This document shows positions 33,445-63,649 of a stretch of 64,000 bases of DNA, piece after piece (position 1 is the first letter of the stretch; each line of letters opens with the position of its first letter). The DNA is from Macrostomum lignano (taxonomy: Eukaryota). The notes beneath the pieces are model-generated. The model saw only the letters and a program-made list of their open reading frames with translations, did no database searches and was not told the DNA's origin. The stretch covers positions 1-64,000 of the forward strand of contig NIVC01002553.1 of the NCBI GenBank assembly GCA_002269645.1, in the 5' to 3' direction. A program made the translations under genes and the position numbers.

Positions 33445-33457
33445 CCTCCGAAAAAAG

Positions 33458-33556
33458 GGTGTGCGTGGTGACCCCCAGTCCTTGGACTGAACAGCCGTAC
33501 GCAGCCTTCAGATGCGCCGCGCAGTAGCTGCGGCTGAGCTGTCGGTTGCACATCTG
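33458..33556 (-). repeat. Interspersed repeat, copy 2, abutting the (TCAG)n tract
   Basis: Reverse-complement match to 17783-17888. Confidence 0.7.
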
Positions 33557-36132: not shown

Positions 36133-39100
36133 ATGGCTCAGGTATGTAGTTTTTGCGTCTCTTGTTGACACGATATGATTTTAGATGAATAAACTTAGAG
36201 AGCCTTTTCATATTGCTTGCTCTGGTTCCAGAACCAGAACCAATTTGTGAAGTATAACTTTTTGTCTCCATAACTAGAGGGAGATACGTGCTATAAAGTT
36301 TTTATTATTGAATGACAATCGCCAAGAAGAAAGTGAAAAATTGTGCTAAGTTAGGTTGTTAAGGCAGTCAAATATTAACAGAGTTTAATAGTTATACTGC
36401 TGTTTTTCTTGGAATTCCGAACCGATTCTGGTTCTGGAATTGGTAATATGAAAAGGCCCAGAGTAGGTCCTATGACTAGGCCTGCCCTAAATTTTATCTT
36501 AGTTAGGCCTAACTATCTTTAAAGCTAAGCTAATCAATGTTTATTGACTTGTTTCATTTTTTGTCAGCTATACAGTTTGTCAACACATTAGCTTTCTATA
36601 AAAATCCACATATTTGTGGGACATTTCATTACCTCTACAGAAATGAGTCATTTCGAAGGTGCCCGCGCCCTCCTTTATCTCTTTTATTTAAATTATTTCC
36701 TTTATTCTCCTTTATCTCCTTTATCTCTTTTATTTAGAAGATTTTTGGGACTCTCTCCTTTATTTTAGCCACTTTAGCTCCTAGCACTTGTACTTAATGT
36801 GTTGTTACTTTAGGGTCCTTTTAAATAATCATTTTTAAGACTATTTTCCTAGGCAAAGTTATGTAGAAAAATAGTTTATAAGTCTCAACAAAGGTTTGTA
36901 TATATTATTAGTTAATATTTGAACAAACTTTAAAGCAGCAACCCTAGATTAGCCACAATATTAGATATGTGGAACTGTGGAGCTAGAAATATACAATTTC
37001 TTCTTAGGACTGCAAATTAGCTAGAAAGATGATATGATCAAAGTAGTCAACAAATAGGCCACAGAATAAAACAACCATAAGAGTATTATGTCCCTTGAGA
37101 GTACAACTGGGAGAGTACATGAGTACAACTGGCTTTTAAAGCAAGGATTGGTAGATTTTTACCTTAAAGGCCAGATAAAGAATCCAGCTAATTGCTGCAA
37201 GGGCAGATAAAAATGGAAAGAAGAATGAATAGACAATAAGAGAAAAAAGAAGTAAGAGAAGGGATAGGAGAATAGATAAAAATATAAGAAGAGACAGGAG
37301 GGTAAGGAGAGAGAGTAGAGAAGAGGGAGGAAGGAAAAGGAGTGCAAGGACAATGGAAGGGAAAAGAGGCAAATAAAAAAGACAAGAAGAGAGAGGAGAG
37401 ATGATATGAGAGAGAGAAGATATAAAAGAAAAAAGAGAAGAGAGGAGAAAGATGAGAGAAAAGAGATTAAAAAGGAGAGATAATAGGGAAGAGAAGAGAG
37501 GAGATAGAAGGGATAGCAAAGGAAAGAGAAAAGAAGAGGGGAGAGATGAGAGAAAAGATAAGAGATCCTAGAGAGGATACAGGAAATAGTAGAAAAAAGA
37601 ATAGAGATAAGCAAGATGAGAGAGAAGAGAAAAGAATAAAGAATAGAGATAAGCAAGATGAGAGAGAAGAGAAAAGAATAAAGAATAGAGATAAGCAAGA
37701 TAAGAGAGAAGAGAAAAGAATAAAGAGGATAAGAGAATTGGAAAAATAGAAAAGAGATGAAAGGAAAGATAGAAGAGAGGAGACAAAAAAGATAGAAGTT
37801 TCAGAGGAGCCAAAAGACATAGAGATGCAGAGGCAAAAGGCCAGAGTTTGCCTATACAGGCCTTAGACAGACATTGCCTGTCATTGTTACATTACCAAAT
37901 TAAATCTCACTTTATTTTGGGGTCAGTCAAACAGTTTCCTTTATTTTACTTTCTCAAAATGTGCCAGCACCCTGCATTTTGTCTATATATTTCTTTATTA
38001 CATTGACATAGATTCCTACTTTTCTGGGCCTATAATCCTATATGTAGTAGGTGGTTGGCCTATATAAAGGAATTTTAGCAAGAGTTATTATAATTTATAG
38101 CATTGAGATAGAAGGCCTTTATGTTTAATAGATGTAATAGCAGCAAAAATTTGCTGCTTTGCACATTATGCATAGGCCTATTGGTGCATGACTAAGACCG
38201 CCACATACCAAGATTGCCATAATACTATTATTGGCTCCTAGTATTGAGGGGAGCTACTAATCTTCTAGCATTGCTATTCCTCTTATAAATTCCTCTCTTG
38301 CAGGCTTGTCCTGTTAGCTATCCAGTCCTATCCATTTATCTCTTCTTTAGCACCATTCAATAATACATTGAGCCAAATTCCTCTCTCAGCTCCTCAAGTG
38401 TGGCAGTCTTGGTCCTACACCAGCCTATTTATATTTAAAAAGCAGCACAAGATTGAGGGGCCTATGGAGGTGCAAAAAGGTAGTGTGACCATACTTAGGA
38501 TCATGTCATGTATGCTGGAAATTTCTGGCGCACATTTGGGACAGCTGGCATACACTTGGTGTACAAAATTTTTGAAAGGGTCTTCTGGCATACACCTTGG
38601 CATATATACAATTGACGCACCCTGCATCATGCTTGGGTGCAACCTAGGGATTCACTCGGCCGTTTCTATTGGCAACACACACATGTAGGTCGCTATTGGA
38701 CGGAATAGTAGTCACGTGACTGCTCTCAGCCAATAGCGACTTACATGTGTGTGTTGCTAATAGAGACGGCCGGGTGATTCCCAAAGTTGCGCATGTATGC
38801 CCTGCATGGCGCACACACATGGTACGCACTGCATGGCGCACATGCATGGCGCACACTGGCTAGAAGAGACTGCGCCACGGCTACTACGAAAGACAAATCA
38901 AAGAATGTAAAGTATGTGAAGCGTGAAATTTTGCACAAAAATTAACAATGATTGTGCAAATATATTGTAATGACAATATACAACTGTTGCTTTATTTTAA
39001 ATATTCTCTAAATCGTGTTTTATTTCTCCTTTTTATAATTTATTTTTGAAATTAAAATATAAATCTTCAAATCCTCAATTTATAATTTTTACTTGCAATT

Positions 39101-42667: not shown

Positions 42668-44050
42668 ACTATCTTCTAGCTGTTGTTGGCTGAATTTCAA
42701 CTAGGATTGAGACTAAGACAATGCCCCTCCCCTAGTAAACTGTTCTGTCGTGTGTCCTTAGTTGTCTCCCCTCTAGGTACATGCATTATACTCGTAATAA
42801 ATAGGAAATTGGTGTTCCGAAATTCTCTTAAGTGTATTTCAATTTGGCTGCAACTGAAGCTCTCTTTGTCGCGTCGGTCGGAACAGCCGGTTCCTCCCAT
42901 TGCCCAGCGGCAGTAGTGGGTTAGCTTTTAATTAGCTCTTGGTTGTCGCGATTGTTCAGATTGCTTCAACACAGTTTAAATTTAACTTGGTAGTGTGGCA
43001 TCGTTTAGTTTAGACTGACTGCACATGTATTGATTATATTTAACTCCCCAGAATTGCCTAGTAGATAGACTGTGTTTCCATCCTTTGTTACTCGCTTAAT
43101 AACAGTTGAAGCAAATCGTTATCTGAAGATCTGCTTCTATCCACCACAATAATATAATATTCTTTTTCAATAGTTAATGCACTATAATGCTATTATTTCT
43201 TAATTCAAGAATAACCCCGTGACACTGGTAGTTTCCCTAATGTGTTTTTAGTTTCTACCAGTTTAATAGCCTATGAAATTAGCACTATAGAATCTTTGTT
43301 CTGCAACTCCAAGTCCCAGACTAAAATTGTGCATCTAATGAGCTATTGCTATAGGAAAAATAAATCTTGAAAGTTAGAAAAAACGTAGTGTTTCGTTCGA
43401 GTCTTATTAGTTGCCCCTAAATGTGATTAATAACCGTTCATTGTTACAATTTTCTTTTCCGCGTGCGGAATAAAAACATGCTGATGCTGAGCGCATTCGT
43501 CCTTCGCATCGCGTAAGTCCGGATCACATCTAGATGCTACAATACTAAGTAATCAAGTATCGCGACTTATTGCACCTGCAGTTTAATATAATGGTCCTAA
43601 AGTTATTGGGGTGATATAGCCTGTTATATCATCTATCGTTAGTCACATAGCCAGCCAGACGGTTGATTCTTGATAGGGCCAGCCCAGGGCGCCAGCATCA
43701 AAGAGCGTTACAGCTGCTCATTGATCATTAAGATCTATGATTTCTTTTAAAAGCAGTATTGTTTGAACAATTGCAACTACTCTTTCGTTTGAATACATCG
43801 TTACTTGCATTAAGAAAATCTAGAACCGGAACTGAATTCGTTACACACTTGCTTGTACGTGTGGTCAATAAAATATTAAACCCGAAAATACAAAGCAATG
43901 CCGTTTAATTAATCAGAAATATGTTTATAATTTGTTTAATATTATAATTTTATTATAACCGTTTTTGTTTTTAAAAGGCCGTAACGAGTTTTTAAATAAC
44001 GTTAAGTCTTAAATTTCAAGTCGCGCGGCGGTGAGGTCCCACAAACGCAT

Positions 44051-45165
44051 ACGTATCTGTTTCCCCATAGATATTCGTATTGATATTCAATTTCTAACAA
44101 ATGCAACAAAATAAACCTACTTGTACAGCTCGGATTTGCTTGAAAATTTACAGAAAAATTATTACACACAAAACAAACACCTCTGTGAAACTTCAAGTCC
44201 ATCAGACCACGCAAAGCGGAATGGCAAGGGTTTTAAAGGTGCTCGTATTTATAATGCATTGTATATGCGCACAGTGTATAACATGTATGCTCATTTGCAA
44301 CACTTGTACAGCTCGGATTTGCATGAAAATTTACAGAAAAATTATTACACACAAAACAAACACCTCTGTGAAACTTCAAGTCCATCAGACCACGCAAAGC
44401 GGAATGGCAAGAGTTTTAAAGGTGCTCGTATTTATAATGCATTGTATATGCGCACAGTGTATAACATGTATGCTCATTTGCAACACTTGTACAGCTCGGA
44501 TTTGCATGAAAATTTACAGAAAAATTATTACACACAAAACAAACATCTTTGTGAAACTTCAAGTCCATCAGACCACGCAAAGCGGAATGGCAAGAGTTTT
44601 AAAGGTGCTCGTATTTATAATGCATTGTATATGCGCACAGTGTATAACATGTATGCCCATTTGCAACACTTGTACAGCTCGGATTTGCTTGAAAATTTAC
44701 AGAAAAATTATTACACACAAAACAAACATCTTTGTGAAACTTCAAGTCCATCAGACCACGCAAAGCGGAATGGCAAGAGTTTTAAAGGTGCTCGTATTTA
44801 TAATGCATTGTATATGCGCACAGTGTATAACATGTATGCCCATTTGCAACACTTGTACAGCTCGGATTTGCATGAAAATTTACAGAAAAATTATTACACA
44901 CAAAACAAACACCTCTGTGAAACTTCAAGTCCATCAGACCACGCAAAGCGGAATGGCAAGAGTTTTAAAGGTGCTCGTATTTATAATGCATTGTATATGC
45001 GCACAGTGTATAACATGTATGCCCATTTGCAACACTTGTACAGCTCGGATTTGCTTGAAAATTTACAGAAAAATTATTGCACACAAAACAAACACCTCTG
45101 TGAAACTTCAAGTCCATCAGACCACGCAAAGCGGAATGGCAAGAGTTTTTTTAAGGTGCTCGTAT
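44051..45165 (+). repeat. Left TIR: 70-bp unique tip plus ~5.7 tandem 183-bp units
   Basis: Units start at 44121, 44304, 44487, 44670, 44853 and 45036. Confidence 0.95.
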
Positions 45166-46844
45166 ATCGTATATTTATATGATGCACATATAGCTTGCTA
45201 GCTCGTAAGCGCGATGCAACGCGAAGTGCAATACCTGCATATAGGCCCGTATATTATACATGTTACATGTACCCAGCTCATGCATGCGTGACTGCGAATT
45301 ATGTCGGCACTGTTTTGGTGAGTATTCCACTCACGTTGCAAATGTAAAATTCAATTAGCAGAATGTAATTTTCATTGCTATTAATGCAAATAGCTATTGT
45401 CCACAAACATTTCTGTTGTTAACCCTATACCAATTCAGTCTCTGATCGTAGCTGCGTAATAAGTCATAAGTCTGAATTACTAACGCGAGCCAAATATTGC
45501 ATGTACATGTATAAGCCAGCCCTGTGAAGCGCAGGTGCCAATTGTAGACTCCTCTTGGCTTGGCACGCAAGCCTAGCACAAAAATAACGCAACATTTGGC
45601 CTAATTTCTACACCACTCTATGCAACCGTTGGGATATGCAGCTTGGGTTAAAAATACAAACTTGTTTCGAAATTTTCAAAGTGACAGTCGCTGAGAACTT
45701 TTGATGTATTTAGTATTACATGTTACGTACATGTGCATATATGTATATGCACGCGTGGTACTTCTAATAACATCAATAAAGCGTGGACAGTTTTGATGAA
45801 ATGCATGTAACCAATAAAAAGGTTATAACAGGAATTTAAATTACAACAAAGATGAATACTTAAATAGATTTACATACAAAATGTACTGAACAGTTCGGCT
45901 CATAATCGCTCTATACCAACCATTAGATCGAGCATGTGTTCCCTAATAATATTACTCTTAGTAGTCATCACGCTGTTGTCAAGCTCTCGATTAAATCGGA
46001 GCCACAAAGATCCACTGTGGCGAGAGGTCCTACTTTTAGTGTAGAAGAGGCCCGATTGAAAACCCTGAGAAGTCCCATGAAAGTTGCAAACTGAACTATT
46101 TAAATGAGCGCTGCTCCACTCTCTGAAAGAATATCGAACACCTGCATGGGCCGCGGTTAGAGCCCCCTGTTTTGTTCGAGTGGGAATGGTTGTTCGCCTG
46201 TTCATGTCCATGTCGGTCGATCCCCAATTCGAGTGGTCCTTAGCATAAATTGATTATATTGCATTCCATGGCTCGTAATCGAACATCTGCATAGGGGGAT
46301 GAAAAAAGCGGGCGAACAAACAAAAACAACGGGATGGGAGGGCGGCCATACATATTTTTCTAGTCAGAAAATTAGCAGCAAAAAGCAGCAGCCTCACGAC
46401 CCTTCTGTACATGGAAGATTGGCCGTCGCGACTGCCACAGGTGCACTCAGAACCAGATCTAGAGAACCTCTTGCTCCAAAAATAAGGAACTGGAGAGATC
46501 CATTTACGAGTAATGGCGACATTCACGTACATGTACAGTTGTGTAAAAATCAAGTAACTAATGCGAAAACATGTCTTTGCACGTTGCGCAACAAAAACCT
46601 GGATCGGTCGACCCTTCGACGCATTCTGTGTGATACCAACGAAGACAGGAGGGACATTCAATCTAGAAATGAAGGGGTGAGCGAAAATTAACCGCATTAT
46701 GCTGTAAGCACAACTCGACTGCATATTCGATCGACTGCATCTTAAGCTGGAGTTCAATCTGTATGACTGCTTTAAGCAATCTGCTTGGCAAAAGTGAAAT
46801 TCGTAGTTAAAAAAATAAAAAAAGGAAAATTACTCGTATTTTAC

Positions 46845-47854
46845 CCAATTTATGCGACGACTAACGCCCGAAGCGTCAGGTTCTGTGTTGCTACAGGCTG
46901 AGCACTCTTCCTGCGTTCCTCCATAGCTGTAGGCCTGGATCACATTCCAGATATACTGTCTGTATCTTCCGAGAGCCGTCGGATTGTTCTTGAACCGGAG
47001 ACCAGAACCAAGAGCTAATGCCCTAGCGTACAGGCATACAAACACTCCGCAACTATGACCATCAGATTGCATTGTTCTCGACATTGTGGCCAGCTCATAT
47101 GGCTTCGATGTGCTGCTGGTGAATACCGGAGCGCTTTGGTCAACAAATGCCATTATTCCATCGGAAGCCAATATGCGGCTAGAAAGTTAACAGAAATTTT
47201 ACAGATTTGCCACATCAGTACTTAAGTTCACTTTTATTTATTCTCTGGACATGTACACAAACTATTGTACTCACTTCCATTTGCGAATTAGAACATGAAA
47301 CTCTTGCTTCTCTTGCGCATTACGCCGAATCGAATCCAGCACAAAGACCTTTCGTTCAACGCCGCAAATAACGATCAAGTAAAAATGCCCGCTGTTTAAA
47401 ATAGGCACGATTATTTGATTCAGGCCCTGCAACATCAAGAGAGCAAATAATTTTATACCTCAAATTGGTGCATGCGTAAGATTTTCATTGAGAATTCACT
47501 ACAAGTGTACAAATTTATTTTGCATCAAAAACGACATTATTGTTTCATTAACAGAACTTGCCTTCCATCCGAGAGTTCTTCTCAGCAAGTTCTGGACTCC
47601 ATCGTTGAACTCATCTCCTGATAGATTCAATATGTAGTAAAAGTCGCCCTCACTTATTACAATCCTTTGGGCGTTGTTCGATGTGATAGCAGTGCAATAG
47701 GCCAATAAAATCTATCGCGAGTAATGCAAGAGGGACAGGAAAAGATAATGGTGAAAATAGGTCATAAGTCAACTGAATTTTCTATTGTAAGTATTTACGT
47801 ATACTTACTTAAGTATTTATTGTAAGTAAGTAAGTATTTATGAAAATACTTACC
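46845..47854 (-). CDS. Spliced C-terminal exons of the transposase gene: Ulp1/peptidase C48-like domain
   Basis: Donor after 47854 (ACG|gtaagt), then exons 47711-47511, 47426-47275 and 47178-~46845, joined by GT-AG introns with matching phases (0, 0, 2). Motifs: IIVPILNSGHFYLIVI, VFVLDSI, QSDGHSCGVFVCLYA. The last exon is not resolved. Confidence 0.85.
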
Positions 47855-50455
47855 GTGTAGTCTAACAGGTTGCTTCCCAACAAACTTTGACGATGCTCTT
47901 GCGTTACGGGAATATCCGTTCCAGAGCCAGGAAGGGTGAAGAGAATCTGGCTATTATCGCTTTGCACCGTTCTTCCTTTCTGCCGCGTGCTCCTCTTGCT
48001 TTGCCACCTGCTTCTACTGTTATCTGCGGTTCCATTTTGACTGGAATTTTTATTGGGTCTGTTCCTACCAGCTGTGCATCCCGGAAGTTTTGATTTTGGG
48101 TTGCTCTGTTGGGACTGACTGCTACTCTTTTCCGTTTCGTCAGGATCGGCGACATTAGCAAAATACTGATTGCTACTAGTATCTGAGTATCTTGAACGCT
48201 TGCTATTTCTCGACCTTTTTGCCAACCTTCAGTTGCAGCTTCTTCTGAGATTGATGACTTCCTTTTTCTGCAAAAACTTGGAGCAGGTACTTTGCTCGAG
48301 ATGGTGCACTCTGAAACTCTACGAAGTACAAAGGGTACATAATTCTCTACGAAGGTACTCAGCCTGGACTTGGTGTTAAATCGACTTTTCACAGAAGAAA
48401 ACCAACTCTCCACATGAGCATTTGAGTAAAAAGACTTTGAATTTTTAGCAATCAAATGATTCCATGTAAATATAGCCCATAGAGGGAGGATGGACAGGTA
48501 TCTAAGCAAGAAAAAGTTTATCAATCGAGGGTTGTAGAATTCATTATCTGTCAGATGCGAATGACCGGTTTTATGCGCGAGAGTATTTTGAATTGTGGTA
48601 AATTCCTTTTTAAAGTATTCGTAGTATGGAGAATTTTTCAGTATCGCGTCACCTTCCGCGTTCATACTTGCATGATCCTTGTCTTGAAGTATAAATGAGT
48701 CTTTGTTGATTGATTCGGAATACTCTGGAACATGGCCATCTCTCAGAAAATTTGCTACCCTAGTTCTAGCAGCAACGGTTTGCTCGGCATACGGAGATCC
48801 AAATATAATAAGCGTGTCCATGATGAAGTTGACGGATAGTTTTTGCGTACTGGAATACTGAATTAAAGAAAATAACTTCAAAAATAGCTGACGGCTTCGC
48901 TGGTTCAAGGAGTGTTTTTTGCAGTGGTCCGAAATTGACTTTATAATATGATTGCTACACAGAAAAACGCCATATTGAATCTCGCTAGGGGTGTCCGTAA
49001 TAAAGTAATTGTAATGCATTTGGATGTACGTTGTCACGTCCGTGTGGTGGAAGTCTAAGCATGAATGAATTTGCGCCCATGAAAAGTCGGAAATAAAAAG
49101 AATATTTAGGTCAACAGAAAAAGGTGAGTTTACACAGTGCAGAATTCTATGGCGGAGGAGTTTTAGAAAGTGAGAAATGGATGCAACGTTATGGGAGTCT
49201 GTAATCATATTCCCAACTGGCGACGATGGAACAGAATCAGTAGCAGTTGTGATGACAGAATAGAGTAGAACAGGATGAGGTGAACAGTTTTTTTCTATTA
49301 ACGAGCCAGTAGCGTCGATATGCAGCACTGTTGGAGTACGAGCTGACATAATTGCTCTAAGAAGCTGTATTTCAAGGTTGGACAATAATACAACACGTAG
49401 TGGATCTAAACTACGCTCCATTATGACTCCAGGAAAATCGGATGCGGATATCGAAGTTTAAAAATGTCTTGTAGACCTCCAAGCTCAACAAAAAGAACAG
49501 AGTGTAACCTCTCGTCTTTCTCCATTTTACTTTTTAAATTATACATCACAGTTTTGGTTTTGCACGCATCAAAGTTGCACGACAGAATGAATGGTAAATT
49601 TTCGATCGCAAGAAAGCGTCTTCTGAATGCTTCAACGGCACCGGCCTCTTTTATATCGTCGTAAATTTCACGTTTTTCTGATTCGGTCGTTCTACGAAAA
49701 CAACTAGCCGTAGCATCTTGATGGTTTAACCTTCCCGTGATAATAACCTCCCAAGACCATGTTGTTCCGTCAACACGTGGTGGTCTTCTCATTATTAAAG
49801 CGTAATTTCTTCTGCATCCTTCAATTTTGCATTCCGCTCTAATTGTCCAAAAATTCTGCTTACTTTTTCTTGAATTCTGCTTTCGAATGTGATTATAGCC
49901 CGTCATCCTCAAACAGCACGTAGCGACTTGTCGCATAGCACGGCAAACTGCTTCATTAAGAAAACTTTTTGAAAACGTATACTTTGGTCCAGATTGACTA
50001 TCTTCCACCGATAGGTTAATTTTGCAGATATCACTCTCCGATAGTTCGATCCGATTCTCCCCAGTTTCATCAGAACTTTCCTCAACTTCTGGTGGTTGTT
50101 CGTTTGACGTCGATTGTGATGAGCTTGTAGCATTCAAATCTACTTGTACACGCGTTGTTCTCTCTTCTCTATTCTCTGCGTTGCAAAAATCTTCGCTTTT
50201 CTGTCCATCGTCGTTTTCTACTATAGGGTCGCTGGGTTCATAAATCGTTTTATCAGCCTGACGTCTCCCGTTTAACGTTGAATGTTTTTGGCCAGCTGTA
50301 TTATATGCACGTCTATTTTTCGATCTCTGAGCTTTCTTTCCTTGGACTTTTCCAGTCGGTTTATTTTTCTTGCTCTTCTGGCTACATGCACTGTTGGAAC
50401 GTCCTGCAGCATCAGTCGTCTCAGTTGACTGGGGTACATGTAGCGACCTATTCAT
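47854..50455 (-). CDS. MULE-type DDE transposase (N-terminal zinc-finger region plus catalytic core), broken into three frames
   Basis: ORF 49421-50521 has ECKIEGC...GRLNH (WRKY/GCM-like fold, inferred). ORF 47904-49421 has LHIDATG (D1), FISDFSWAQ (D2), CSNH (CxxH) and SNAHVESWFSSVK (E). Frame breaks lie near 49440 and 48215. First in-frame ATG at 50455. Confidence 0.85.
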
Positions 50456-51144
50456 TAGACCCCAAAGATATACCCGCGATCGCAGTCGGTTTCGAATTTT
50501 GAGTGCCCGACATAAGAACACATAAAGTGGTGTAGAGTGACGAAAGCCAGTTGGAGGAGGATAAATTCTACTGGCTTCTACCAGGACAGATTGAGCCTAA
50601 AATAGGAATAACCCATTTAAAATTACGGATAAAGATCCAGTTTCGACATTGCATGCATTCAGAAAGTTATGAAACTGCAAATACCTGCTCTTTTGATGGC
50701 AGTCCAAAACAGAAAGTTACTAGAATTGTGGTCAGTACTACGAAGAAAAATACGAGTCCACGAGTCCACATATTTGAAAAATTCAATGGTCAGTTAAGTT
50801 ATTGCTTATATAGAATCTAGTATTCGTTCAAGAGAAAATGAGAAAATTTACTTAGAATTGAAATTAAAGAAGCAACTAGTAAGTGGGACGCAGGGACCAA
50901 GCGTGCAGGTCTACATTTATCAGAGATTAAACTAAAAGAGAGGGGTGGGGAGTGTGCTGATAGAAAAATAGGGGTGGGTGCGCGACTAAAGAAAGAGACG
51001 ATAATAAATAGCCAATCAGAATGCAGCAAGGGAGAGAGATAGCTGGACAGAGAGGCAAAAAACAGTAAACAGGACGAGTGCACATGAACTGAAGATAGAT
51101 ATAAGAAAGTAGCTACGCAATATAGGTTGTTAGACTGCTGGAGT

Positions 51145-51270
51145 GCAGTGGAGCTGGAGATACACAAATTCCTCTCAGGGCTGCAAATTGGAGGAGAAAG
51201 AAGAGAGATGAAATGAGGAGAAGAGAGAGTAGAAAGTAGAGATGAGAGAGATGAGATGAGACAGAGAGAG

Positions 51271-51333
<63 letters not shown>

Positions 51334-52515
51334 AGGAGATAGATGAGATGGGAGAGAGAGGGAAGAGGAGAAAGTAGAGATGAGAGAGAAGAGAGTAGAG
51401 ATTAGAGAGTGGAGAGAGAGAGGAGAGAGGAGAAAGTAGAGATGAGAGAGAAGAGATTAGAGATTAGAGAGTGGAGAGAGAGGAGAGAAGAGATTGGAAG
51501 AGAGGAGTCATAAGAGGGGAAAGAAAATAGTACAGAGGAGAGATTTGAGAACATATAAGAGTAAAGATAACAGAATAGAGAGTAGAGATGATCGAGAGAG
51601 CAGATACGAGAGTGAACAGACGACAGATGGTAGAATAGAGAACAGCGGAGATAGAAGTGATAAGAGAGAATCTATTACAGACACGAAAGCAGAGAGGAGA
51701 GACAAAGGGAGAGAGAGAAGTGGAGTGAGGAAAGAGGAGAAAAGATGGGAGAGAATCGAGAGCAAAAGGGAGAGAGGGGAAAGGGAGAGACAGGGGAGAG
51801 GAGAGGAAAGAGAAGAACGGAGAGGGGAGAGAATATAGTAAGGAGATGAGAGATGGGAGAGCAGAGAACAGAGAGATGAGTGGAGAGATAAGAGCGAGGG
51901 AGAGAGAGATGGAGAGGAGAGGTGAGAGTAGTGGAGGAAGTTGAGAGAGGAGAGATGATAAAAGGAGACTACAGATCAGATAATGAGAGAGAGTATGAGG
52001 CAGGAAAGATATATTACAGAGGATTGAGACGAGAGAGGAGAGAGTAAAGAGATGATAGAAGAGATGAGAGACGAGAGCAGATCGGGGGAGAGTAGAGAGA
52101 AGAGATCGGAGAGAGGAGAGAAGTGGGAAGTGTCAAGAAAGAGGGGAGAGTGAGGAGTGAGAATTTATACAGAGGGGAGAGAGAATAGAGAGTAGAGAGC
52201 AGAGATAAATAAGAAGAGATAAGAGAGCAGAAAATAAGAAGAGAAAGGAGAGATGATAAAGCAATGAGAGAGAAGAGAGTAGAAAAACCAAAGAAAGATA
52301 AGGAGAGACAAGAAAAGATCGGGGAGAGGAAGAAATAAAGGAGAGAGGAAAAAAGAGATGAGATGAGATGGGAGGGAAAGGATGAGAGACGATAGAGAAG
52401 AGAGGAAACAGTAGAGAATTGACTGAAGTTTCAAAGGAATCTAGGGACGTAGGGAGGCGCAGGGACAGAGGCCGGAGTTTGCCAATACTTGTTTTAAGAC
52501 AGACATTGCCTGACA
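51145..52515 (+). repeat. GA-rich element with conserved flanks, copy B, nested in the MULE
   Basis: gtggagctggagatacacaaattcctctcagggctgcaaatt ... ~1.3-kb purine tract ... aggccggagtttgccaatac...agacagacattgcctg. Confidence 0.65.
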
Positions 52516-52694
52516 TTCTTGGGCAACACCACAAGCCAACATGTGATTAATGCTTGCCTCAAATTCTAATTTTATACGAACTTATACTCCACTTTTATTT
52601 TTAACTCTATCCTATAATTATTAACAAGTTCTGTGTTTGAGTATAACTTCATATTCTGGAACACAAGCAAAAGTAGTTCCGGCTGGGATTGGAA

Positions 52695-53462
52695 TTCATA
52701 TACAATGCATTATAAATACGAGCACCTTTAAAACCCTTGCCATTCCGCTTTGCGTGGTCTGATGGACTTGAAGTTTCACAAAGATGTTTGTTTTGTGTGT
52801 AATAATTTTTCTGTAAATTTTCATGCAAATCCGAGCTGTACAAGTGTTGCAAATGGGCATACATGTTATACACTGTGCGCATATACAATGCATTATAAAT
52901 ACGAGCACCTTTAAAACCCTTGCCATTCCGCTTTGCGTGGTCTGATGGACTTGAAGTTTCACATAGGTGTTTGTTTTGTGTGTAATAATTTTTCTGTAAA
53001 TTTTCATGCAAATCCGAGCTGTACAAGTGTTGCAAATGGGCATACATGTTATACACTGTGCGCATATACAATGCATTATAAATACGAGCACCTTTAAAAC
53101 TCTTGCCATTCCGCTTTGCGTGGTCTGATGGACTTGAAGTTTCACAGAGGTGTTTGTTTTGTGTGTAATAATTTTTCTGTAAATTTTCATGCAAATCCGA
53201 GCTGTACAAGTGTTGCAAATGGGCATACATGTTATACACTGTGCGCATATACAATGCATTATAAATACGAGCACCTTTAAAACTCTTGCCATTCCGCTTT
53301 GCGTGGTCTGATGGACTTGAAGTTTCACAGAGGTGTTTGTTTTGTGTGTAATAATTTTTCTGTAAATTTTCATGCAAATCCGAGCTGTACAAGTAGGTTT
53401 ATTTTGTTGCATTTGTTAGAAATTGAATATCAATACGAATATCTATGGGGAAACAGATACGT
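52695..53462 (-). repeat. Right TIR: 70-bp unique tip plus ~3.8 tandem 183-bp units
   Basis: Reverse complement of the left arm, with fewer units. Confidence 0.95.
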
Positions 53463-53550
53463 CAAACGCATTGTGTAGTTTTTTTTGTGTTTTAGTATAT
53501 TTTTTTAATTGTTGCTCAAGACATATCTTATTTTTAGTGAAATTTTTGGA

Positions 53551-56500
53551 ATGTCTTGGATTTTTGGTGGTGGATCTAAACCGCCACAGGGGAGCAACAA
53601 TGCACCTCAACAACAAAATGCACAGAACCAAGGCCAAGGCCAAGGAGCAAAGTCGTCCAAAACAACAATACCAACTGATAGTGGTTACAGTTTTGATTCT
53701 GAGGCTTTGGAAAGAGCGGCTAAGGCAGCTAAAGAATTGGAACACTCTAGTAAGTTTTTAGCTTTTGATTTGTTTGACAATGTAATGTAACTTTGTAAAA
53801 GACACTAGGCCTATTGCCATTGGTCCTTAGGGTGTCTAGCTCTAGCTTACTAAACTCTACTAAACTCTTGAATTTTATATGCATTCTAATTTCTATACTT
53901 AGAGGCAAGCTATCTATTTTCCATTTATTCTTATAATTTTGTTAGTTGTGGCTTCAAAAAGTTTTTATTTGTATATTGTTATTGTCCTAAATTAATTTTA
54001 TCTTATATAATTTAGGCCCTATGCTTTTCATTAGATGTTATAATTGAACTTATGGAAGTGCTTATCCCAATGATCCCGTGCCAATAATTCCAATTTTATC
54101 CACATGGAACTGTGTCAATAATTTTCAGCTTATCCCTATAGCTAAGATTGTGCAGTTGTTTGTGTTTAGTTTTGTGTATTGATGTTAAATGAATATTGTC
54201 ATTATTATTAGCAATATTATCATTATTACTATATAAAGTTATTTTGCAAGTTGAATTTTGCAAGTCTCATTTGCCTCGATCTTTAGGTCGTTCAGGGGTG
54301 GACTGAGGGGGGAGGGCAAGGGAGCCATGGGATGGCCCCTCCTCAGCTCTGCCACAAAATCCTCAGATGTATTGGTATCATGCTGTATTGGTATCATGGT
54401 ACCCTAATTGCAGCTTTGGCCTAACTAGACATGAGGCTTGCCCCTCAATAAAATCCTGGGTCCATCCCTAAGGTCATTTAGTCGTTCTAAGTAAAATTGG
54501 TAGCTAAGCAAATATAAAATTAACCCTTTTAATGATGAAAAGTTTTAACAAAGTACTCAATACTATTCAGTATTCAATACATGTAGTTTACTTAAAAGAT
54601 TTGTAAAATAGTGAAAACAAAAAGACAATTTTTGAACAGATTCATTTTAAGGTTCTTTATTCTAATAAGCTATTGTAGGGATAAGCTAGAAATTATCAAC
54701 ATAGATCTGTGTGGATAAGATTGGAATTATTGGCATGGGGCCATAGATCTTGGGATTTTCAGACTGGGATTAGGATCTTATGTTACATCTGCATTTTATT
54801 TATTCAGTAGGCTTTTAATCTAATTTTTAGTATTGCTAACCTTGATCTTCACTATTAGATTTATTTAATGGAATATTTATAGGCACAACAGCCATGTCAA
54901 TAAATATAGAGCTTATAGGCATGGCGACCATGTCTATAATATTTGAGCTTATAGGTATGCTATAATCATTGATATACAACTCTGGATCTAGATTGTGTAA
55001 TAGTATAGGCTGGAACAAGAATCCTATCTCAGCTAAATATATGCCAATATATGCTAAAACAAAAAAATCCCTAAAATGTAAGCCAAAAATTTCTCTTGAA
55101 AAGGTCATTTGGTTTTCACAAATGGAAGTTTCCTAAGAAAGGCTTTTGTACAAAAAGTCTTTAAAATATTACAAATATTTTCATTTTAAACAAATTTAAA
55201 TTAAACCTATAGAAATGGTAATGCAAAATTTATGTTTTAGCAATCATTTATACAATTCCATACTCTCTTGGCTGTGGCTAGTGTCAGTGTCGGTTCTGTC
55301 TTTAGTTTTTTATTTTCAATCTTTACAAAGCAAAAAGTTTATTACTGACTTTCTAGACCATACAAATTTTCCTTTATTTTATGTAAAAACATTAATTTAC
55401 CTTATAATTTTCATGCATGACATAAATTTATTCACCAAAATTAGTACCACAAAAAATTGGCATGAAATTGTGCGCCAAAATTTGTTTACAAATTTTTAAA
55501 AGGGTCATTTGTATACTGGAATTTTCCGGCGTAATTTAACCTTCCAGAGTCTGGTATACAACTTGTGTTCTATAGGGCTCTCTCATAAGTAAATGATGGC
55601 TTAGAGGATATATCAATTGCCTTATGGTTGTATATAACAAGATTCAAATCTTAGATGGTTGCAGTTTTTTTAATTTGAATTTTTTTAATGAATAGAATTT
55701 TTTGCATCTTGAACTTTTTAAGTTTTTTAATTAAAATACTAAATAATAAATTAAATTACATTTTATTTTTTATTAGAGTAATAATAAATCTTAAAGTGTG
55801 GCCATAATTATATATATAGCAACTAAAAAAAAATAATTTTTTCAATATGTATTGGCCACACTTTGTTATGAGTTAAACATTATATAGCCTTACTAAAGCT
55901 AGGGGTATAGGGGTGGCAAGCCCCCTCCCCTCCACTAGCCTTACTAAAGCCAATGATATTTGTAGTGACATTCTCTACCTAAGAAGGCAACAACTAAACT
56001 AAATATAGTCCAATAAGCTTCTTAGTTATTAATATTTAGGCTAAATACATAAACAATAAAAACACAATACCCATCATCCCACCTTGAAGACAACAAAAAG
56101 GGGTTTATCCTCAATTCGCTGAATCCCAATTTGCCGATTCTTAGCTTGCCGAACCCCAATTTGCCGATACCTGGTTTGCCAAAATTCCCAAGTTGCCAAT
56201 TCCCAATTTGCCAAAATTCTTGATTTGCCAAAATTATTTATTTGCCAAAATTCCTCATTTGCTGAATCCCAACTTGCCAATTTCCTGATTTGCCAAATTT
56301 CCAAATTTTGCCAAATTTGCCAATTCCTGGTTTGCCAGAATTCCTGATTTGCTGAAATTCCTGATTTGCCAAATTCACTATTCTTAACTATTAGTAGAGA
56401 TAGTATTAGTATTAGTAAGTCACTTTAGAAATAGTAGAGTAAATGATAACAAGCAAAAATATACAAAAAGTTTGAACAAAGAATGGCCTATCTATTATCT

Positions 56501-59500
56501 AGCACAGGCCATAGGCATTACCAAAGATTTGACATAATATAAATTGGCTAAATAGTGAATTCAGGCAAATCAGGAAATTGGCAAGTCAGGATTTGGCAAA
56601 TGAGGAATTTTGGCAAATGAGGAATTTTGGCAAATTAGGAATTTTGGCAAATTAGGAATTTTGGCAAATTAGGAATTTTGGCAAATTAGGAATTGGTGAC
56701 TTGGGAATTTCAGTGAACCAGGAATTGGCTAATTGGGGGTTAACCAAAATAGGCTAGTAGGGGGGCTAGCCACATCCTACATCCCTGGCTTTAGTAAGGC
56801 TAGTGGGGGGGACTTGCTGTCCCAATACCCCTGGCTTTGTAAGGCTATATAATGTTTAACTTATGGCAAAGTGTGGCTGATATGTATTAAAAATTCAAGT
56901 AACAAATAAAAAAATGTTTAAAAATTCTTGTTTAAAAATTCTTGTTTAAAATGTTTAAAAATGTTTTAAACATGGCAGCTATGCCTATAAGCTCCAATAT
57001 CATATATGCCCAACACCTGTCCAACCCATCCAAACTGGACAGATGAAATGGCTGCCAGCCAAGGTAAGTCTCAAAATTGAAAAAGCAAAGAATGAAAATT
57101 TGGGATAGAAAGAAAGAAAAAAAGAGAAAGGGAAAGAAAAGAAGGAGAAGAGAAAGAAGAAAAGAGAAAAAGACAAGAAAAGTCATATACAAAGTAAAAA
57201 TTAAGTTGCAAACAGGGGAACTAAGTCACAATCGGGAGGAACTAAGTTGCAATTGCACATAGGTAAGTTGCAAATTTGGACAAAACTAAGTTGCACTGGA
57301 TGGGTGAAATTTTGAGGTTGGGCATATATATCCAATATTATAGACACAGCCACCTACCATGTTTCTAAGTATAAATCCATTCAATATTAACAACACAGCC
57401 ACCCACCATGTCTCTAAGTGTGAACCCATTCAATATTAATGACACAGCCGCTGTGCAAGCTTCATTGACACAATGGCCATCTATAAGTTTCTGCATTATA
57501 GACACAGCCACCGTGTCTCTAAGTGTGGTATTTATTTTAACATTTTGATAATCATTAATATTTAAGCCTACATGAACAAACATTAGAAAAACTTGGCTAT
57601 ATTATTATAAAATCTTTTGTTAAAAAATTGCTGGAATTTGAATTCTTTTTGTTTTTCAAGTCTAAAAATATGATTCAAGTGAATGAATTAATAGTTAAGT
57701 ATATACTAGCAGCTAAATTATTTATTATAGTTAATCCCTATTGATATAAGTGGACAAAAAGTGTCCAACTGTCCATCGCAATTTTGGAATTTTGTGGTGT
57801 TGCATTGTGGCTTAAGTCAACGCAGGTAGTGTTGCAGGGCAATGTGGTTTTAGATAAATGGCAAGAGTAACTTTGACTGTCTTATTAAGGCTAAATTAAG
57901 GTGAAAGTAGGCGAAATTTGTGTTTTAGCAGTTGTGAAGTTTAGCTAATGTGAAGTTTAGCGCTTGTGAAAGTAGGTGACAAATTCGTAGCTAATGTGAA
58001 GTTTAGCGCTTGTGAAGTTTAGCACTTGTGAAATTTAGCGTTTGTGAAAGTAGCTGGCGAATTTGTAGCTATTATGAAGTTTAGCGCTTGTGAAAGTAAG
58101 TGAGTTAGCGGTTATGAAGTTTAGCGCTTGTGAAGTTTAGCGCTTGTGAAGCCTCCCCCTTTAAATATTGTATATTTGCATTTTTGGATATTAATCTACA
58201 TTACATAAAACCTTCAACCAATTATAGAATATGCTAAGGAAGCATTTGAGCTTACCAAACAGCAGGAGGTTACTAATCAGCTCTCCAATCAGGCCAACAT
58301 CAAGGTAAGACTTTGTTGCATAAATAATCATGTAGCTCTGACCAAATGCTTGCTGCAAGTGTTGTTAAATACTTAAATGCTACCCTCACTACTACCATCA
58401 CTATCGCAGCAATATGAGCTACAAATCGAACAGATGAAAGGCGAACAAATTCGAGTTCAAGAAGATGAGAGAAGGAAAACTCTTCTAGAAGAGGCTCGAA
58501 TGAAGAAGGCCCGCGAAGAATACCAGGACCAGTTGGCCAGGCAGCGCCACCAGGATCAGCTGGCTACGAAGGCTCGAGCCGAAGAAGACAGCCTCCGTCG
58601 TCAGGAAGAGTCCATCCAGCGGCAGGAGGCACTGCGCCGGCAAACAGTCGAGTATGAGCAGGACCTGCGCTACAAGAACGATATGAAACTGTTGGAGGCC
58701 AGGCTGCGCGGCGAGGCGCAGGTTGAGCGCGAGAATCGCGACGTCCGATTGGAACAGGTTAGCTAAGCTTGCTTTGTGGGTTCGCAATTCTTTTATTAGA
58801 GACAGGGAGCTGTGTGCACCCTGGCGCACTTTAAGCGACATTGTCACACAACCGGCGAGAGGTATTACTGCCAATTCCGTACGCAGTCATACGCACAGGC
58901 ACACTGTGCCTTGGGGGGTTGGTCACCAAGACCGCTAATTGCACGAGCAGAGCCAAGCCGAGATTCCAATTTAGCCCCAAATTAATGTGACTGCACTTGG
59001 AATCGAGCCTGGGCCGCTGGCACATCAGAGCGCCGCGCTAGACCACTATAGGCTCCTTTGGCTTTTGGAAGCTTTTAGAAAAGTTAAGCAAAGTTGGTTC
59101 CGGTTAGTACCCAACTGAATGGGCTATTGGCATTACCTTTCAAAAGCAGTCTTAAAATTGAAATGAAGTTGAGCTCCAGTTCAGAGTAACAGCCTTAAGC
59201 TGTGCCTGTGGTAGAATTAATTCAGGGTGGAATCGAACCCGGCTATTTTGACGCGTTTACCGCTGAGCTGCTCTGCCCCCCCCCCCCGAGCGCATTTTAG
59301 CGCTGCTGTAGAAATACTCCTCGTGCATCAGCAAGGGCATAAAACAGGGGTGGGCTAACTCCGGCCCGCAAAGCCTCTCTATCCGGCCCTCGGGTCCTTG
59401 GACACTTTAGAATGGCAATCCGGCCCGGCCCGCTCAAGGTTTGTCTCTTCTCAGTTATCTCTCGTGCTCTCCTCTCATCTCCTCTCCCTCTCCTCTCTTC

Positions 59501-62500
59501 TCTCCTCTCAGCTCCTCTACTCTACTCTCTCATCTCCTCTCATCTCCTCTTATCTCCTTTCGTTTCACTCACCTTAGATTAGAAAGACAGGGCCGTGAGG
59601 AATGGGCTGAATCGCCTCAGCGCCGGTTGTGGGACGATGTCGCCGAAGGTGCCCACTGCCTTTCTGCGATTATTATTGCTAATATTATTATAATATTTCT
59701 ATTATCCCACAATAACCATTCCCAGGTCAAGGCCAAAGCCGTAGAAGATCGGGCCACCTGGCAGGAGTCGCTGCGCACAAGCGGCGACCTGGTTGCTAAG
59801 GCCTACCACGCCCTATTTGCTGATTGGACTCGAACTGTACGAACGGTAGCCCAGGTGGGCCTGCTAGCCGGCAGCATCTACGGCGTCAAATACGGCCTCG
59901 GGGTTGGATTTCGCGCGGCCGAAGCTCGAATTGGCAAGCCGTCGCTGGTGCGCCAGACCTCCAGGTTGAACGCCGTAGACTTGGTGAAATCTCCCGTGCT
60001 AACTGCGCGCCGGTTTGTTTCTAAACCGTCCGACGCTCTGAAGGGCATTATACTCAAGCCCGAGCTGGAGGCCAGACTGCGCGAGGTTGCCATAGCAACT
60101 AGGCACACTAAGAAGAATAACGGATATTATAGGAATCTGTTGATGTGCGGACCGCCTGGCACCGGAAAGACTATGTTTGTTAAGGTGAGATTTATACCAT
60201 TATTAATATACTATTATTAATTGCTTCTTCTAGGAGCAGAAACTGTACCAATTGCCTTAGAAAACTACTAGTGATAGTCTACTGGGCACGCCCGTTGAAA
60301 AGAAGTTGCAATATATTTGATTAATCTATTTGGCAGAGCTTGGCGCTGCACTCTGGCATGGACTATGCTATCATGACTGGAGGCGATGTGGCTCCCATGG
60401 GCAAGGAGGGCGTCACCGCTGTGCACAAAGTGTTCGACTGGGCTAGCACTAGCCGGAGAGGGTGAGCTGAGTCTACTACTACTGTCAGTAGCTTGTGGCA
60501 TGTCTTGCAGTTTTATTGTCCATTATATAAGATTCAGCTTATAGTCAAAGGTGTATAGAATCGCTGAAACAAGTAGGATAAAATCCCTGCCACAAGTAGA
60601 ATAGAATGGCTGACACAAGTAGGATAGAATGGCTGACACAAGTAGGATAGAATCCCTGCCACAAGTAGAATAGAATGGCTGACACAAGTAGGATAGAATG
60701 GCTGCCACATGTATGATAGAATGACTGACACAAGTAGGATAGAATCCCTGCCACAAGTAGGATAGGATCGCTGACACAAGTAGGATAGAATGACTGACAC
60801 AAGTAGGATAGAATCGCTGACACAAGTAGGATAGAATCGCTGACACAAGTAGGATAGAATCCCTGCCACAAGTAGGATAGACTGACTGACACAAGTAGGA
60901 TAGAATGACTGACACAAGTAGGATAGAATGACTGACACAAGTAGGATAGAATGACTGACACAAGTAGGATAGAATGACTGACACAAGTAGGATAAAATGA
61001 CTGACACAAGTAGGATAAAATGACTGACACAAGTAGGATAGACTGACTGACACAAGTAGGATAGAATGACTGCCACAAGTAGGATAGAATGGCTGACACA
61101 AGTAGGATAGAATGGCTGCCACAAGTATGATAGAATGGCTGACACAAGTAGGATAGAATCGCTGACACAAGTAGGATAGAATCGCTGACACAAGTAGGAT
61201 AGGATCGCTGACACAAGTAGGATAGAATGACTGACACAAGTAGGATAGAATCGCTGACACAAGTAGGATAGAATCGCTGACACAAGTAGGATAGAATCCC
61301 TGCCACAAGTAGGATAGAATGACTGACACAAGTAGGATAGACTGACTGACACAAGTAGGATAGAATGACTGACACAAGTAGGATAGAATGACTGACACAA
61401 GTAGGATAGAATGAGTGACACAAGTAAGATAGAATCGCTGACACAAGTAAGATAGAATCGCTGACACAAATAAGATAGAATCGCCAATTAGATAGAATAT
61501 AGAATATAATAGACTACAGAACAATTTAGATTTTAGCCTGCGGCCTCTCACTCCCGTCTTTCAAGCGTTCTTCTATTCGTTGACGAGGCCGACGCATTCC
61601 TGCGCAAGCGCAGTCAGGAGCGCATCAGCGAAGACATGCGCGCAACGCTGAACGCTTTTCTCTATCGGACTGGCGAACAGTCGCAGAAGTTCATGCTAGT
61701 GTTGGCGTCCAATCAGCCTGAGCAGCTGGACTGGGCCATCAATGACCGGGTGGACGAGATTGTGGAATTCGACCTGCCTGATCTAGCCGAGCGAGAGAGG
61801 CTGGTTGCTCATTATTATGAAAAGTACGTTTGACTCGGGCCTGATCTCTGGGGCACGGATTGTGACAGGAGATTGTTTAGTGTGGTTCTCCTTCGCCTAA
61901 AAACTGAGGATCGGGTTTGATATTTCAACTGAAAAATGAGGTTCCACCTAAATATTGGACATGGGACCGAATTCATTTTCGTAGGCCTTGGGGATGGGAC
62001 TGAGAGCCCCACCTAAATATCGGGGTGGGACTGAGAGCCCCACCTAAATATCGGAATGGGACTGGGAGTCCACCTAAATATCGGGAGTGGGACTCGGAGT
62101 CCACCTAAATATCGGGATGGGACTGGGAGTCCACCTAAATATCGAGATGGGACTCGGAGTCCACCTAAATATCGGGGGGAGACTGAGAGCCCACCTAAAT
62201 ATCGAGATGGGACTCGGAGTCCACCTAAATATCGGGGGAGACTGAGAGCCCACCTAAATATCGGGAGTGGGACTCGGGAGTCCACCTAAATATCGGGATG
62301 GGACTAGGAGCCCACCTAAATATATGGGACTGGAATCTACCTAAATATGAGGATAGAACTGGGAGTCCACCTAAATTTGAGGATGGGACTGGAATCCACC
62401 TAAATATTAGGATGGGACTGGGAGTCCACCTAAATATGGGTGGTGGGACTGGAATCCACCTAAATATGAGTGGTGGGACTGGAATCCACCTAAATATGAG

Positions 62501-63649
62501 GATGGGACTGGAATCCCCCTAAATATTAGGATGGGACTGGGAGTCCACCTAAATATGGGTGGTGGGACTGGAATCCACCTAAATATGAGGATGGGACTGG
62601 GAGTCCACCTAAATATCGGGATGGGACTGAGAGCCCACCTAAATATCGGGATGGGACTGGGAGTCCACCTAAATATCGGGAGTGGGACTCGGAGTCCACC
62701 TAAATATGGGGATGGGACTGGGAGCCCACCTAAATATCGGGATGGGACTGGGAGTCCACCTAAATATCGGGATGGGACTGGGAGCCCACCTAAATATCGG
62801 GATGGGACTGGGAGTCCACCTAAATATCGGGAGTGGGACTCGGAGTCCACCTAAATATCGGGATGGGACTGGGAGTCCACCTAAATATGGGGATGGGACT
62901 GGGAGCCCACCTAAATATCCGGATGGGACTGGGAGTCCACCTAAATATGGGGATGGGCTGGGAGTCCACCTAAATATCTGGATGGGACTGGGAGTCCACC
63001 TAAATATCCGGATGGGACTGGGAGTCCACCTAAATATCCGGATGGGACTGGGAGTCCACCTAAATATGGGGATGGGACTGGGAGCCCACCTAAATATCCG
63101 GATGGGACTGGGAGTCCACCTAAATATCGGGATGGGACTGGGAGCCCATCTAAATATCGGGATGGGACTGGGAGTCCACCTAAATATCGGGGTGAGACTG
63201 GGGCTCACCTATTGTAGATATTGGAGATGGGATTCAGTGGTCCGCCTGAAAATGGTTCGTGGTTCAGTGGTTCGTCACAACACAGCAGTATAATAATCCT
63301 CGCTCCCTCATTTAGGTACGTACTGCAGCCGTCCATGGACAAGCGCAACAAAATCACCGTGGACCCCAGCATCGATCACACGGCCAAGTGTCGCGAAATT
63401 GCCGCCAAAACTGCCGGCTTATCTGGCCGAGAGATCTCCAAGATTGCCGTGGCCTGGCAGGCGGCCGCCTACGCTTCAGAGACTGGCGTGATCGATGCCA
63501 ACCTGCTAGACGAGAAGGTCGCCCTGTCCGTGGCCGCCCACGCCAAGAAGGTGCAGTGGGCGATGCACACTCTGCCATTGGAGTCGGCTCCAGATGCTAC
63601 TGCCGGCTCTAAGCGAGACTATCTGTCGCCGAGTGTGCCGACATCTTGA
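53551..63649 (+). CDS. ATAD3: ATPase family AAA domain-containing protein 3 (mitochondrial), 599 aa
   Basis: Exons: 53551-53749, 58228-58304, 58410-58757, 59726-60184, 60337-60461, 61566-61823, 63316-63649 = 1800 nt with consistent phases. Motifs: [30 protein letters not shown], Walker [18 protein letters not shown], Walker [20 protein letters not shown]. Confidence 0.96.
54076..54739. mobile_element. Degenerate foldback element in ATAD3 intron 1
   Basis: 54076-54142 is ~80% identical by eye to the reverse complement of 54668-54739. Confidence 0.65.
54293..54470. mobile_element. Small hAT-type MITE nested in the preceding element
   Basis: Termini CAGGGGTGGAC/GTCCATCCCTA. 8-bp TSD AGGTCGTT/AGGTCATT with one mismatch. 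Confidence 0.7.
55853..56879. mobile_element. hAT-type non-autonomous element with ~100-bp TIRs and inverted subterminal arrays
   Basis: 8-bp TSD ATATGTAT (55845-55852 and 56880-56887). TIR ggccacactttg...ttaaacattatatagccttac... is mirrored at the right end. Arrays tttgccaaaattcct (56150-56370) versus aggaattttggcaaa (56565-56700). Confidence 0.75.
57930..58150. repeat. ~18-bp degenerate tandem (gtgaagtttagcgcttgt) in ATAD3 intron 1
   Basis: Read directly. Confidence 0.8.
58808..59052 (-). mobile_element. tRNA-derived SINE-like repeat, family 1, copy in ATAD3 intron 3
   Basis: Shares ggaatcgagcc...cgctggcacatcagagcgccgcgc.agac.act and gcagtcatacgca with 42134-42339. Confidence 0.65.
59085..59283 (-). 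mobile_element. tRNA-derived SINE-like repeat, second family
   Basis: Minus strand GCAGCTCAGCGGT (A-box-like) and GGGTTCGATTCC (B box), closely spaced with no anticodon arm. The downstream boundary is uncertain. Confidence 0.55.
60560..61490. repeat. 23-bp minisatellite (acacaagtaggatagaatgactg), ~40 units, ATAD3 intron 5
   Basis: Read directly. Confidence 0.96.
61944..63200. repeat. 30-bp minisatellite (ccacctaaatatcgggatgggactgggagt), ~40 units, ATAD3 intron 6
   Basis: Read directly. Confidence 0.96.

Follow-up and report, generated by a model that had tools for sequence, protein, structure and literature searches.

The first 64 kb of contig NIVC01002553.1 of the flatworm Macrostomum lignano (assembly GCA_002269645.1), referred to here as the window and used for all coordinates, harbor a recent insertion of a cut-and-paste DNA transposon from the Rehavkus group, a branch of the Mutator superfamily, and we assign a probability of roughly 0.88 to this reading. 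The element has a length of 9,412 bp and is bounded on both sides by a perfect 9-bp direct repeat, CAAACGCAT, the two copies of which directly abut the ends of the terminal inverted repeats (TIRs) and represent the target site duplication (TSD; Table 1). The 9-mer occurs just five times on both strands of the 64-kb window, and a match of two given 9-mers by chance has a probability of 4^-9. The empty site before the insertion would read ggtcccaCAAACGCATtgtgtag. A TSD of 9 bp is typical for Rehavkus and is found here for one insertion. Each TIR starts with a unique tip of 68 bp (ACGTATCTGTTTCCCC...), which is followed by a tandem array of a 183-bp unit. The two tips are identical, and a 38-nt probe derived from them has two sites in the window, which are both element tips. 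The possibility that the tip is a diverged portion of the 183-bp unit was rejected, since the similarity between both is at chance level. The arms differ in length, with 1,115 bp on the left (44051-45165) and 766 bp on the right (52697-53462), and when they are compared in register from the tips only 9 of 766 positions differ, all of them at five sites that also vary among the units. Long TIRs with subterminal tandem repeats, another Rehavkus trait, are therefore present. No other fragments of the element were found elsewhere in the window, and a scan of the window against Rfam gave no match. From the identical tips and the perfect TSD the insertion looks young, and the ends of this copy are, as judged from their sequence, fit for mobilization. 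The first-pass annotation of this stretch had proposed a young transposon insertion in a flatworm lineage with foldback-like TIRs built of near-identical 183-bp units and a perfect 9-bp TSD, and all of this agrees with our analysis. It had also given the matching tips a length of 70 bp; they are indeed 100% complementary, but over 68 bp.

As the genome of M. lignano is repeat-rich and hard to assemble (PMC5730564), and copy-number errors are common in tandem arrays, it was considered whether the structure could have arisen as a palindromic chimera of long reads or by the collapse of a satellite. However, between the arms lie 7.5 kb of coding sequence that is unique and coherent, the identical tips abut a perfect 9-bp direct repeat of the flanking DNA, and palindromes caused by missed adapters give neither TSDs nor unequal arms. 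An origin by misassembly is therefore very improbable, even though the copy number of the 183-bp units may still be wrong.

The entire coding capacity of the element lies on the minus strand, where a single gene encodes a transposase with a conceptual product of 1,114 aa after two 1-nt corrections, which are discussed below. It begins with an N-terminal open reading frame (ORF) at 50455-49424, which is followed by an open frame of 517 codons with the DDE motifs (49457-47907), by a third frame in which a basic linker leads into the beginning of the Ulp1 domain, and by three more exons. The DDE motifs are HIDATGS (D381), SDFSW (D457 and W460), C-S-N-H (C500 and H503) and NAHVESW (E683), and the residues D381, D457, W460, C500-x2-H503 and E683 are invariant or nearly so among the family members. 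Upstream of this catalytic core lies a Cys/His-rich region (SRK...C-x4-C...H...FRRTT), which is conserved across the homologs and for which the Pfam scan gave no match; it is presumed to be a zinc-finger DNA-binding domain. Downstream of the core follows a Ulp1/SENP-like cysteine protease domain (Peptidase_C48, PF02902; 34.7 bits, E 2e-8), which keeps the His (GHF), Asp (LDS), Gln and Cys (QSDGHSCG) of this protease type. The nearest solved sequences are those of SENP2 and yeast Ulp1, to which the positions of these four residues align. The C-terminus is formed by a PHD-type finger, a domain that is characteristic for Rehavkus transposases. It aligns with the PHD fingers of the homologs, and presumably its Trp residues correspond in position to those by which other PHD fingers build the methyl-lysine cage. 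The DDE/CxxH transposase had already been recognized in the first-pass annotation.

A continuous reading of the Ulp1 and PHD domains is obtained by four introns of 142, 135, 96 and 182 nt, all of which are confined to this part of the gene. Three of them have GT-AG borders, and the 135-nt intron has GC-AG borders. The residues at the splice junctions (DYT|IL, GWK|GL, KWN|RI, and INW|IE) align with conserved residues of the intronless homologs P0002, P0004, and P0005. A third frameshift, which had been suspected within the Ulp1 domain, vanished when the acceptor at 47712/47711 was used. A search for an annotated gene encoding ORF2 found none, which is consistent with the genome annotation of M. 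lignano having left out transcripts that overlap repeats (PMC5730564).

The assignment to Rehavkus was tested with the DDE domain. As references we used the DDE domains of six Repbase Rehavkus elements (Rehavkus-1_TC, -3_TC, -1_HR, -1_DY, -2_NVi, and Rehavkus1_AP) and of four canonical Mutator-like elements (MULEs), namely MULE1_EI, MuDR1_TP, MuDR1_SM, and MuDR-3_TV, which were taken from the supplement of Dupeyron et al. 2019 (PMC6446971). In BLASTP, four of the Rehavkus references were matched with E 1e-17 to 4e-10, whereby Rehavkus-1_HR, -1_TC and -3_TC aligned over the whole reference domain to residues 378-690 of the element protein and Rehavkus-1_DY to residues 378-600. A hidden Markov model (HMM) built from 50 homologs, from which the element sequence itself was excluded, scored the six Rehavkus domains with 95-300 bits and the four canonical MULEs with at most 13 bits. 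The reverse test gave the same picture: an HMM of the six Rehavkus DDE domains matched the element protein with 116 bits (E 6e-37, HMM positions 1-305, residues 378-690) and the four canonical MULEs with at most 19 bits, a weak similarity that was reached by MuDR-3_TV. The protein thus shows the DDE homology to Repbase transposases that defines Rehavkus. The first-pass annotation had referred to the Rehavkus/FB-NOF group, and its placement is correct for Rehavkus; its claim to novelty as a possibly undescribed family was overstated, the kind itself being known. In addition, it has the features of the Mutator superfamily in the broad sense, i.e., an RNase H-like DDE domain, the (C/D)x2H motif, the conserved W, and a relationship to IS256. 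In the AlphaFold2 model of the core, residues 8-392 are predicted with confidence, and the best fold neighbor of the model in the PDB is the IS256-family transposase of ISCth4 with a probability of 0.99-1.0, followed by Hermes, the P element and RAG1. The hAT, P and Transib superfamilies were rejected on the grounds that their fold matches are lower and that the protein falls into Rehavkus in the profile tests. FLYWCH, a trait of Phantom MULEs, had no Pfam match in the element protein. The sole strong viral fold match was the uncharacterized bracovirus protein O92526.

Word-indexed protein searches with a 1,075-aa model and then with an alignment of 51 sequences found no homologs, whereas an exhaustive protein search yielded 670 relatives at E <= 0.001. 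The closest one, P0001 from the Logan assembly of run SRR31628403, has an identity of 51%, and the others share 19-34% with the query. P0002, P0004, and P0005 (995-1,212 aa) have the same order of Cys/His region, DDE domain, Ulp1 and PHD finger; P0002 and P0004 have an Asn in place of the first catalytic Asp (LNATGS). When 51 sequences, i.e., 50 homologs and the element ORF, were scanned with Pfam, significant PHD matches were present in 9, Peptidase_C48 in 6, OTU in 4 and UCH in 2, which suggests that fusions with proteases of ubiquitin-like modifiers (C48, OTU, UCH) and with PHD fingers recur in the clade, as far as can be judged from the relatives examined. Contigs of the relatives, obtained from public runs and metagenomes, carry tandem arrays (186-187, 209 and 174 bp) beside the gene, which often reach the contig end. 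For this reason nucleosome-sized units seem to be common in the clade. No inverted partner arms were found within the contigs L003-L008, and as L003 and L008 represent the same locus, no element boundaries could be derived from that pair.

Several points weigh against the reading as a Rehavkus transposon of the described kind. The Pfam MULE model (PF10551) matched neither the element protein nor any of the 50 homologs; evidently this model does not cover the Rehavkus branch. The TM-scores to ISCth4 are low (0.2-0.3), and the PHD finger scores 14.4 bits in Pfam, which is under the cut-off of 24. No minisatellite before the 3' TIR, as it belongs to the description of Rehavkus, was seen between the stop codon and the 3' arm besides the arm units; the sole internal simple repeat is a separate dispersed repeat and sits 5' of the gene. 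Furthermore, the roles that can be suggested for the PHD finger, the Ulp1 domain and the 183-bp units are conjectural, and the coding sequence as assembled is broken twice by 1-nt deficits.

The first break lies between the N-terminal region and the DDE core, and the second one cuts off the linker, Ulp1 and PHD from this core. Each amounts to one missing base, located in a homopolymer run or next to it, as can be concluded from the homolog P0001 and from a conserved motif. P0001 passes the first break in a single frame (...LGILQSLYESEIKDPLLPGVIRERCIEPL), where the element has ...LGGLQDIFKLRYPHP / DFPGVIMERSLDPL in two frames, and the alignment pairs ...DPLLPGVIRERCIEPL of P0001 with ...HP(D/IF)FPGVIMERSLDPL of the element. 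A 71-nt intron at this position was rejected, because P0001 is read through in one frame. At the second break, a near-invariant E-x-W precedes the A5 run in frame 0, and the conserved Tyr, 10 residues past the Lys, is readable only in the shifted frame. A 44-nt intron was rejected here as well, since the E-x-W...Y motif is kept only with a 1-nt correction. With one base restored per site, 1,114 codons are read without a stop, and the catalytic residues of both DDE and Ulp1 are intact.

An active autonomous element would have an uninterrupted transposase frame, which is lacking in the sequence as assembled. Assembly errors and real mutations have the same signature at such positions, and either could be the cause. 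It has close to an even chance that the copy is autonomous and potentially active and that the deficits are homopolymer deletions of the PacBio and Canu assembly which were left unfixed by Pilon in repeated sequence. The assembly was indeed made with PacBio and Canu and polished with Pilon (PMC5730564), each break is one missing base in or near a homopolymer (CC/TTTT and AAAAA), and the stop-free corrected frame with its catalytic residues as well as the identical tips and the perfect TSD fit such a copy. However, homopolymers are also favored by real indel mutations, and the polishing made use of Illumina reads. Just as probable, and thus likewise slightly below even odds, is a copy that is young yet defective, with real frameshifts, and that was mobilized, or is mobilizable, in trans by an intact relative elsewhere in the genome. 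The frameshifts are present in the sequence as given, and copies of DNA transposons usually have intact ends and broken genes; on the other hand, it would be an odd pattern of decay for a real pseudogene if 3.3 kb of coding sequence had acquired two frameshifts but no stop and no further damage. Finally, the breaks might be regulatory, with programmed -1 frameshifting or transcriptional slippage joining the frames as in bacterial IS3 and IS1. Both shifts are -1, and the first one is situated exactly at the border of the putative DNA-binding region with the catalytic core. However, a canonical slippery heptamer (X XXY YYZ) in the zero frame is lacking at both sites, homopolymers of the length of A5 and T4 do not suffice for efficient slippage during transcription, P0001, P0002, P0004, and P0005 stay in one frame, and to our knowledge there is no precedent in eukaryotic DNA transposons, so that this explanation is hardly credible. 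A full protein can be expected from this copy only if both breaks are assembly errors; otherwise the copy is young, non-autonomous and dependent on a transposase supplied in trans. The earlier description of the transposon as complete therefore holds for the ends and the set of domains, but not for the reading frame, and the suggestion that it may still be active is unproven, as the two single-base frameshifts cut the N-terminal region, the DDE core and the Ulp1/PHD part from each other.

Table 1. Features of the Rehavkus element in the 64-kb window and arrays in contigs of relatives.
Feature	Position	Strand	Remarks
Left TSD copy, CAAACGCAT	44042-44050		abuts inverted-repeat end directly
Left TIR tip, 68 bp unique	44051-44118	+	identical to right tip
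Left subterminal array, 183-bp unit	44119-45165	+	5.7 copies, 98% match among units
Transposase gene	46558-50455	-	1,114 aa after two 1-nt corrections
Exons of transposase gene	50455-47854, 47711-47562, 47426-47275, 47178-46845, 46662-46558	-	stop TAG
Cys/His-rich N-terminal region	49685-49876	-	conserved across homologs
Frameshift 1, 1-nt deficit in ccgcatccgattttcctgg	49428-49446	-	C2 run 49441-49440 or T4 run 49437-49434
DDE catalytic domain, Rehavkus type	48387-49325	-	D381, D457, W460, C500-x2-H503, E683
Frameshift 2, 1-nt deficit at A5 run (gaaggttggcaaaaaggtcg)	48211-48230	-	run at 48220-48216
Ulp1/SENP-like cysteine protease (Peptidase_C48)	47040-47946	-	PF02902, spliced from four exons
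C-terminal PHD-type finger, C4HC3	46573-46904	-	residues 1061-1108, interrupted by last intron
GA-rich low-complexity block	51145-52522		between gene 5' end and right arm
Right subterminal array, 183-bp unit, inverted	52697-53394	-	3.8 copies, 99% match
Right TIR tip, 68 bp	53395-53462	-	100% complementary to left tip
Right TSD copy, CAAACGCAT	53463-53471		abuts inverted-repeat end directly
Tandem arrays beside genes of relatives	L003 14208-17143; L008 8599-11476; L004 14943-17043; L005 1-5582		coordinates of the respective contigs

A mechanism of transposition can be proposed by analogy with the characterized MULE Muta1 (PMC5499845). In this scheme, the transposase would recognize recurring binding sites, which lie in the subterminal units as well as in the tips, and would pair both ends of the element. 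For Muta1, a higher number of subterminal repeats leads to stronger binding and cleavage (PMC5499845). Excision would then proceed by DDE catalysis with the formation of hairpins on the flanking DNA, for which the invariant W460 and the C-x2-H would be the residues tied to hairpin chemistry, and the free 3'-OH ends would join target DNA that is cut with a 9-bp stagger, giving rise to the TSD. The PHD finger is probably a reader of promoter-type chromatin that could direct the insertion to active promoters, which would fit the position of the element 79 bp upstream of the start codon of an ATAD3-like gene. Ulp1 probably cleaves SUMO off a substrate that is of host origin or the transposase itself, and it could act on chromatin or repair factors modified by SUMO.

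The ATAD3-like gene starts with the ATG at 53551-53553, the distance being counted from the end of the right TSD, which places the element in the 5' leader or promoter region of a host gene. The exon opened by this ATG (region 53472-53790) matches positions 4-44 of Pfam ATAD3_N with E 8e-8, and a later exon at 59441-60220 matches positions 186-265, the end of ATAD3_N, as well as the first part of the AAA domain with its Walker A motif (GPPGTGKT). An effect of the insertion on the promoter or leader of this gene is possible. Insertion near genes is a habit of MULEs that is described in the 2019 survey (PMC6446971).

The GA-rich block within the element is collinear with 36977-37888 at 67-78% identity. 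Both loci have non-simple ends in common, …GGAGCTGGAGATACACAAATTCC… and …GAGTTTGCC.ATAC…AGACAGACATTGCCTG, and the block is therefore probably a nested or independent dispersed repeat rather than a simple expansion. At 55839-56893, probably in intron 1 of the ATAD3-like gene, lies a smaller and older foldback-like structure. Its outer inverted repeats (58 nt, 84% identity) enclose inverted arrays of ~17-19-bp TTTGCCAAA-type repeats around a unique center of ~200 bp; no clear TSD was seen for this structure. The window further contains a Sybindin/TRAPPC-like single-exon ORF (4244-4786, E 4e-30), a single-exon rhodopsin-type G-protein-coupled receptor (19029-20363), and an ORF at 14277-14786 that resembles by eye the C-terminal part of a reverse transcriptase and has no Pfam match. 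Long simple-repeat or minisatellite tracts with spurious long ORFs are located at 21020-21544, 22290-22970, 32769-33616, 37159-37698, 60523-61551, and 62669-63293, which fits the reported richness of this genome in simple repeats.

Rehavkus is a sparsely described branch of Mutator, known mainly from Repbase entries. In the 2019 survey, arthropods and an annelid alone are listed as its hosts (PMC6446971), and compared with these the M. lignano copy widens the host range to the Platyhelminthes. As the tips, the 183-bp units, the gene model and the domains are well delimited, the copy can also serve as a reference that helps to annotate a very repeat-rich genome, and the fusions with proteases of ubiquitin-like modifiers and PHD fingers in the clade deserve a proper survey. 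It is possible, albeit rather unlikely, that the breaks are assembly errors and that an intact, currently mobile Rehavkus element is reported here from a flatworm for the first time. Such an element would have potential as a transposon tool in a species with working transgenesis by zygote injection, and it would offer a test system for the roles of Ulp1 and PHD in a transposase, e.g., in promoter-proximal targeting. The general understanding of such elements is not changed by these findings.

Among the known systems, the bacterial transposases of ISCth4 and the IS256 family share with the element the predicted catalytic domain, for which ISCth4 is the best structural neighbor. IS256 is the accepted prokaryotic relative of Mutator, and the top fold match fits this relationship, whereas the identity of 11-13%, the low TM-scores and the unrelated element architecture set these transposases apart. 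Inverted arms of tandem repeats are also found in Foldback (FB/FB-NOF) of Drosophila and in Tetris. A 9-bp TSD is reported for FB of Drosophila, but its arms make up most of the element. The Phantom-clade foldback MULEs Muta1 of Aedes aegypti and Tm1 of Meloidogyne share the 8-9-bp TSD, TIRs composed of a terminal motif and subterminal tandem repeats, and the DDE, W and (C/D)x2H residues (PMC5499845, PMC3169594). However, their units have 12-15 bp instead of 183 bp, and their transposases of ~500 aa contain FLYWCH and neither Ulp1 nor PHD; by description they belong to a different clade. The plant MULEs with Ulp1 (KI-MULE/CUMULE), likewise compared by description, carry a C48 Ulp1 in a Mutator-superfamily element, but in the plants Ulp1 usually comes as a separate or captured gene, and the DDE domain matches the Pfam MULE model. 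The MuDR-type transposons of Hydra and Branchiostoma (Bao & Jurka, as cited in PMC2836005) are, according to the description given there, Mutator elements with both a C48 Ulp1 and a PHD; these two domains were noted in Mutator transposases of hydra and lancelet in 2010. For Rehavkus itself, the entries in Table 1 and Table S1 of the 2019 survey give a TSD of 9 bp and TIR lengths of 26-412 bp, with a single ORF, a PHD finger and a minisatellite as further traits (PMC6446971), and in Tribolium the elements have long inverted termini with variable numbers of satellite-like repeats (bioRxiv 10.1101/2024.12.02.626372). The element described here differs from the Repbase Rehavkus elements in an identity of just 24-25% in the DDE domain, in its flatworm host, in the joining of 183-bp units with a unique 68-bp tip, and in the minisatellite before the 3' TIR, which is not recognized. 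With the Repbase elements it shares the 9-bp TSD, the size range of 5-18 kb, the long TIRs with subterminal tandem repeats and a DDE domain that is homologous from end to end; the architecture of the element is not new, but of a kind that has already been described.

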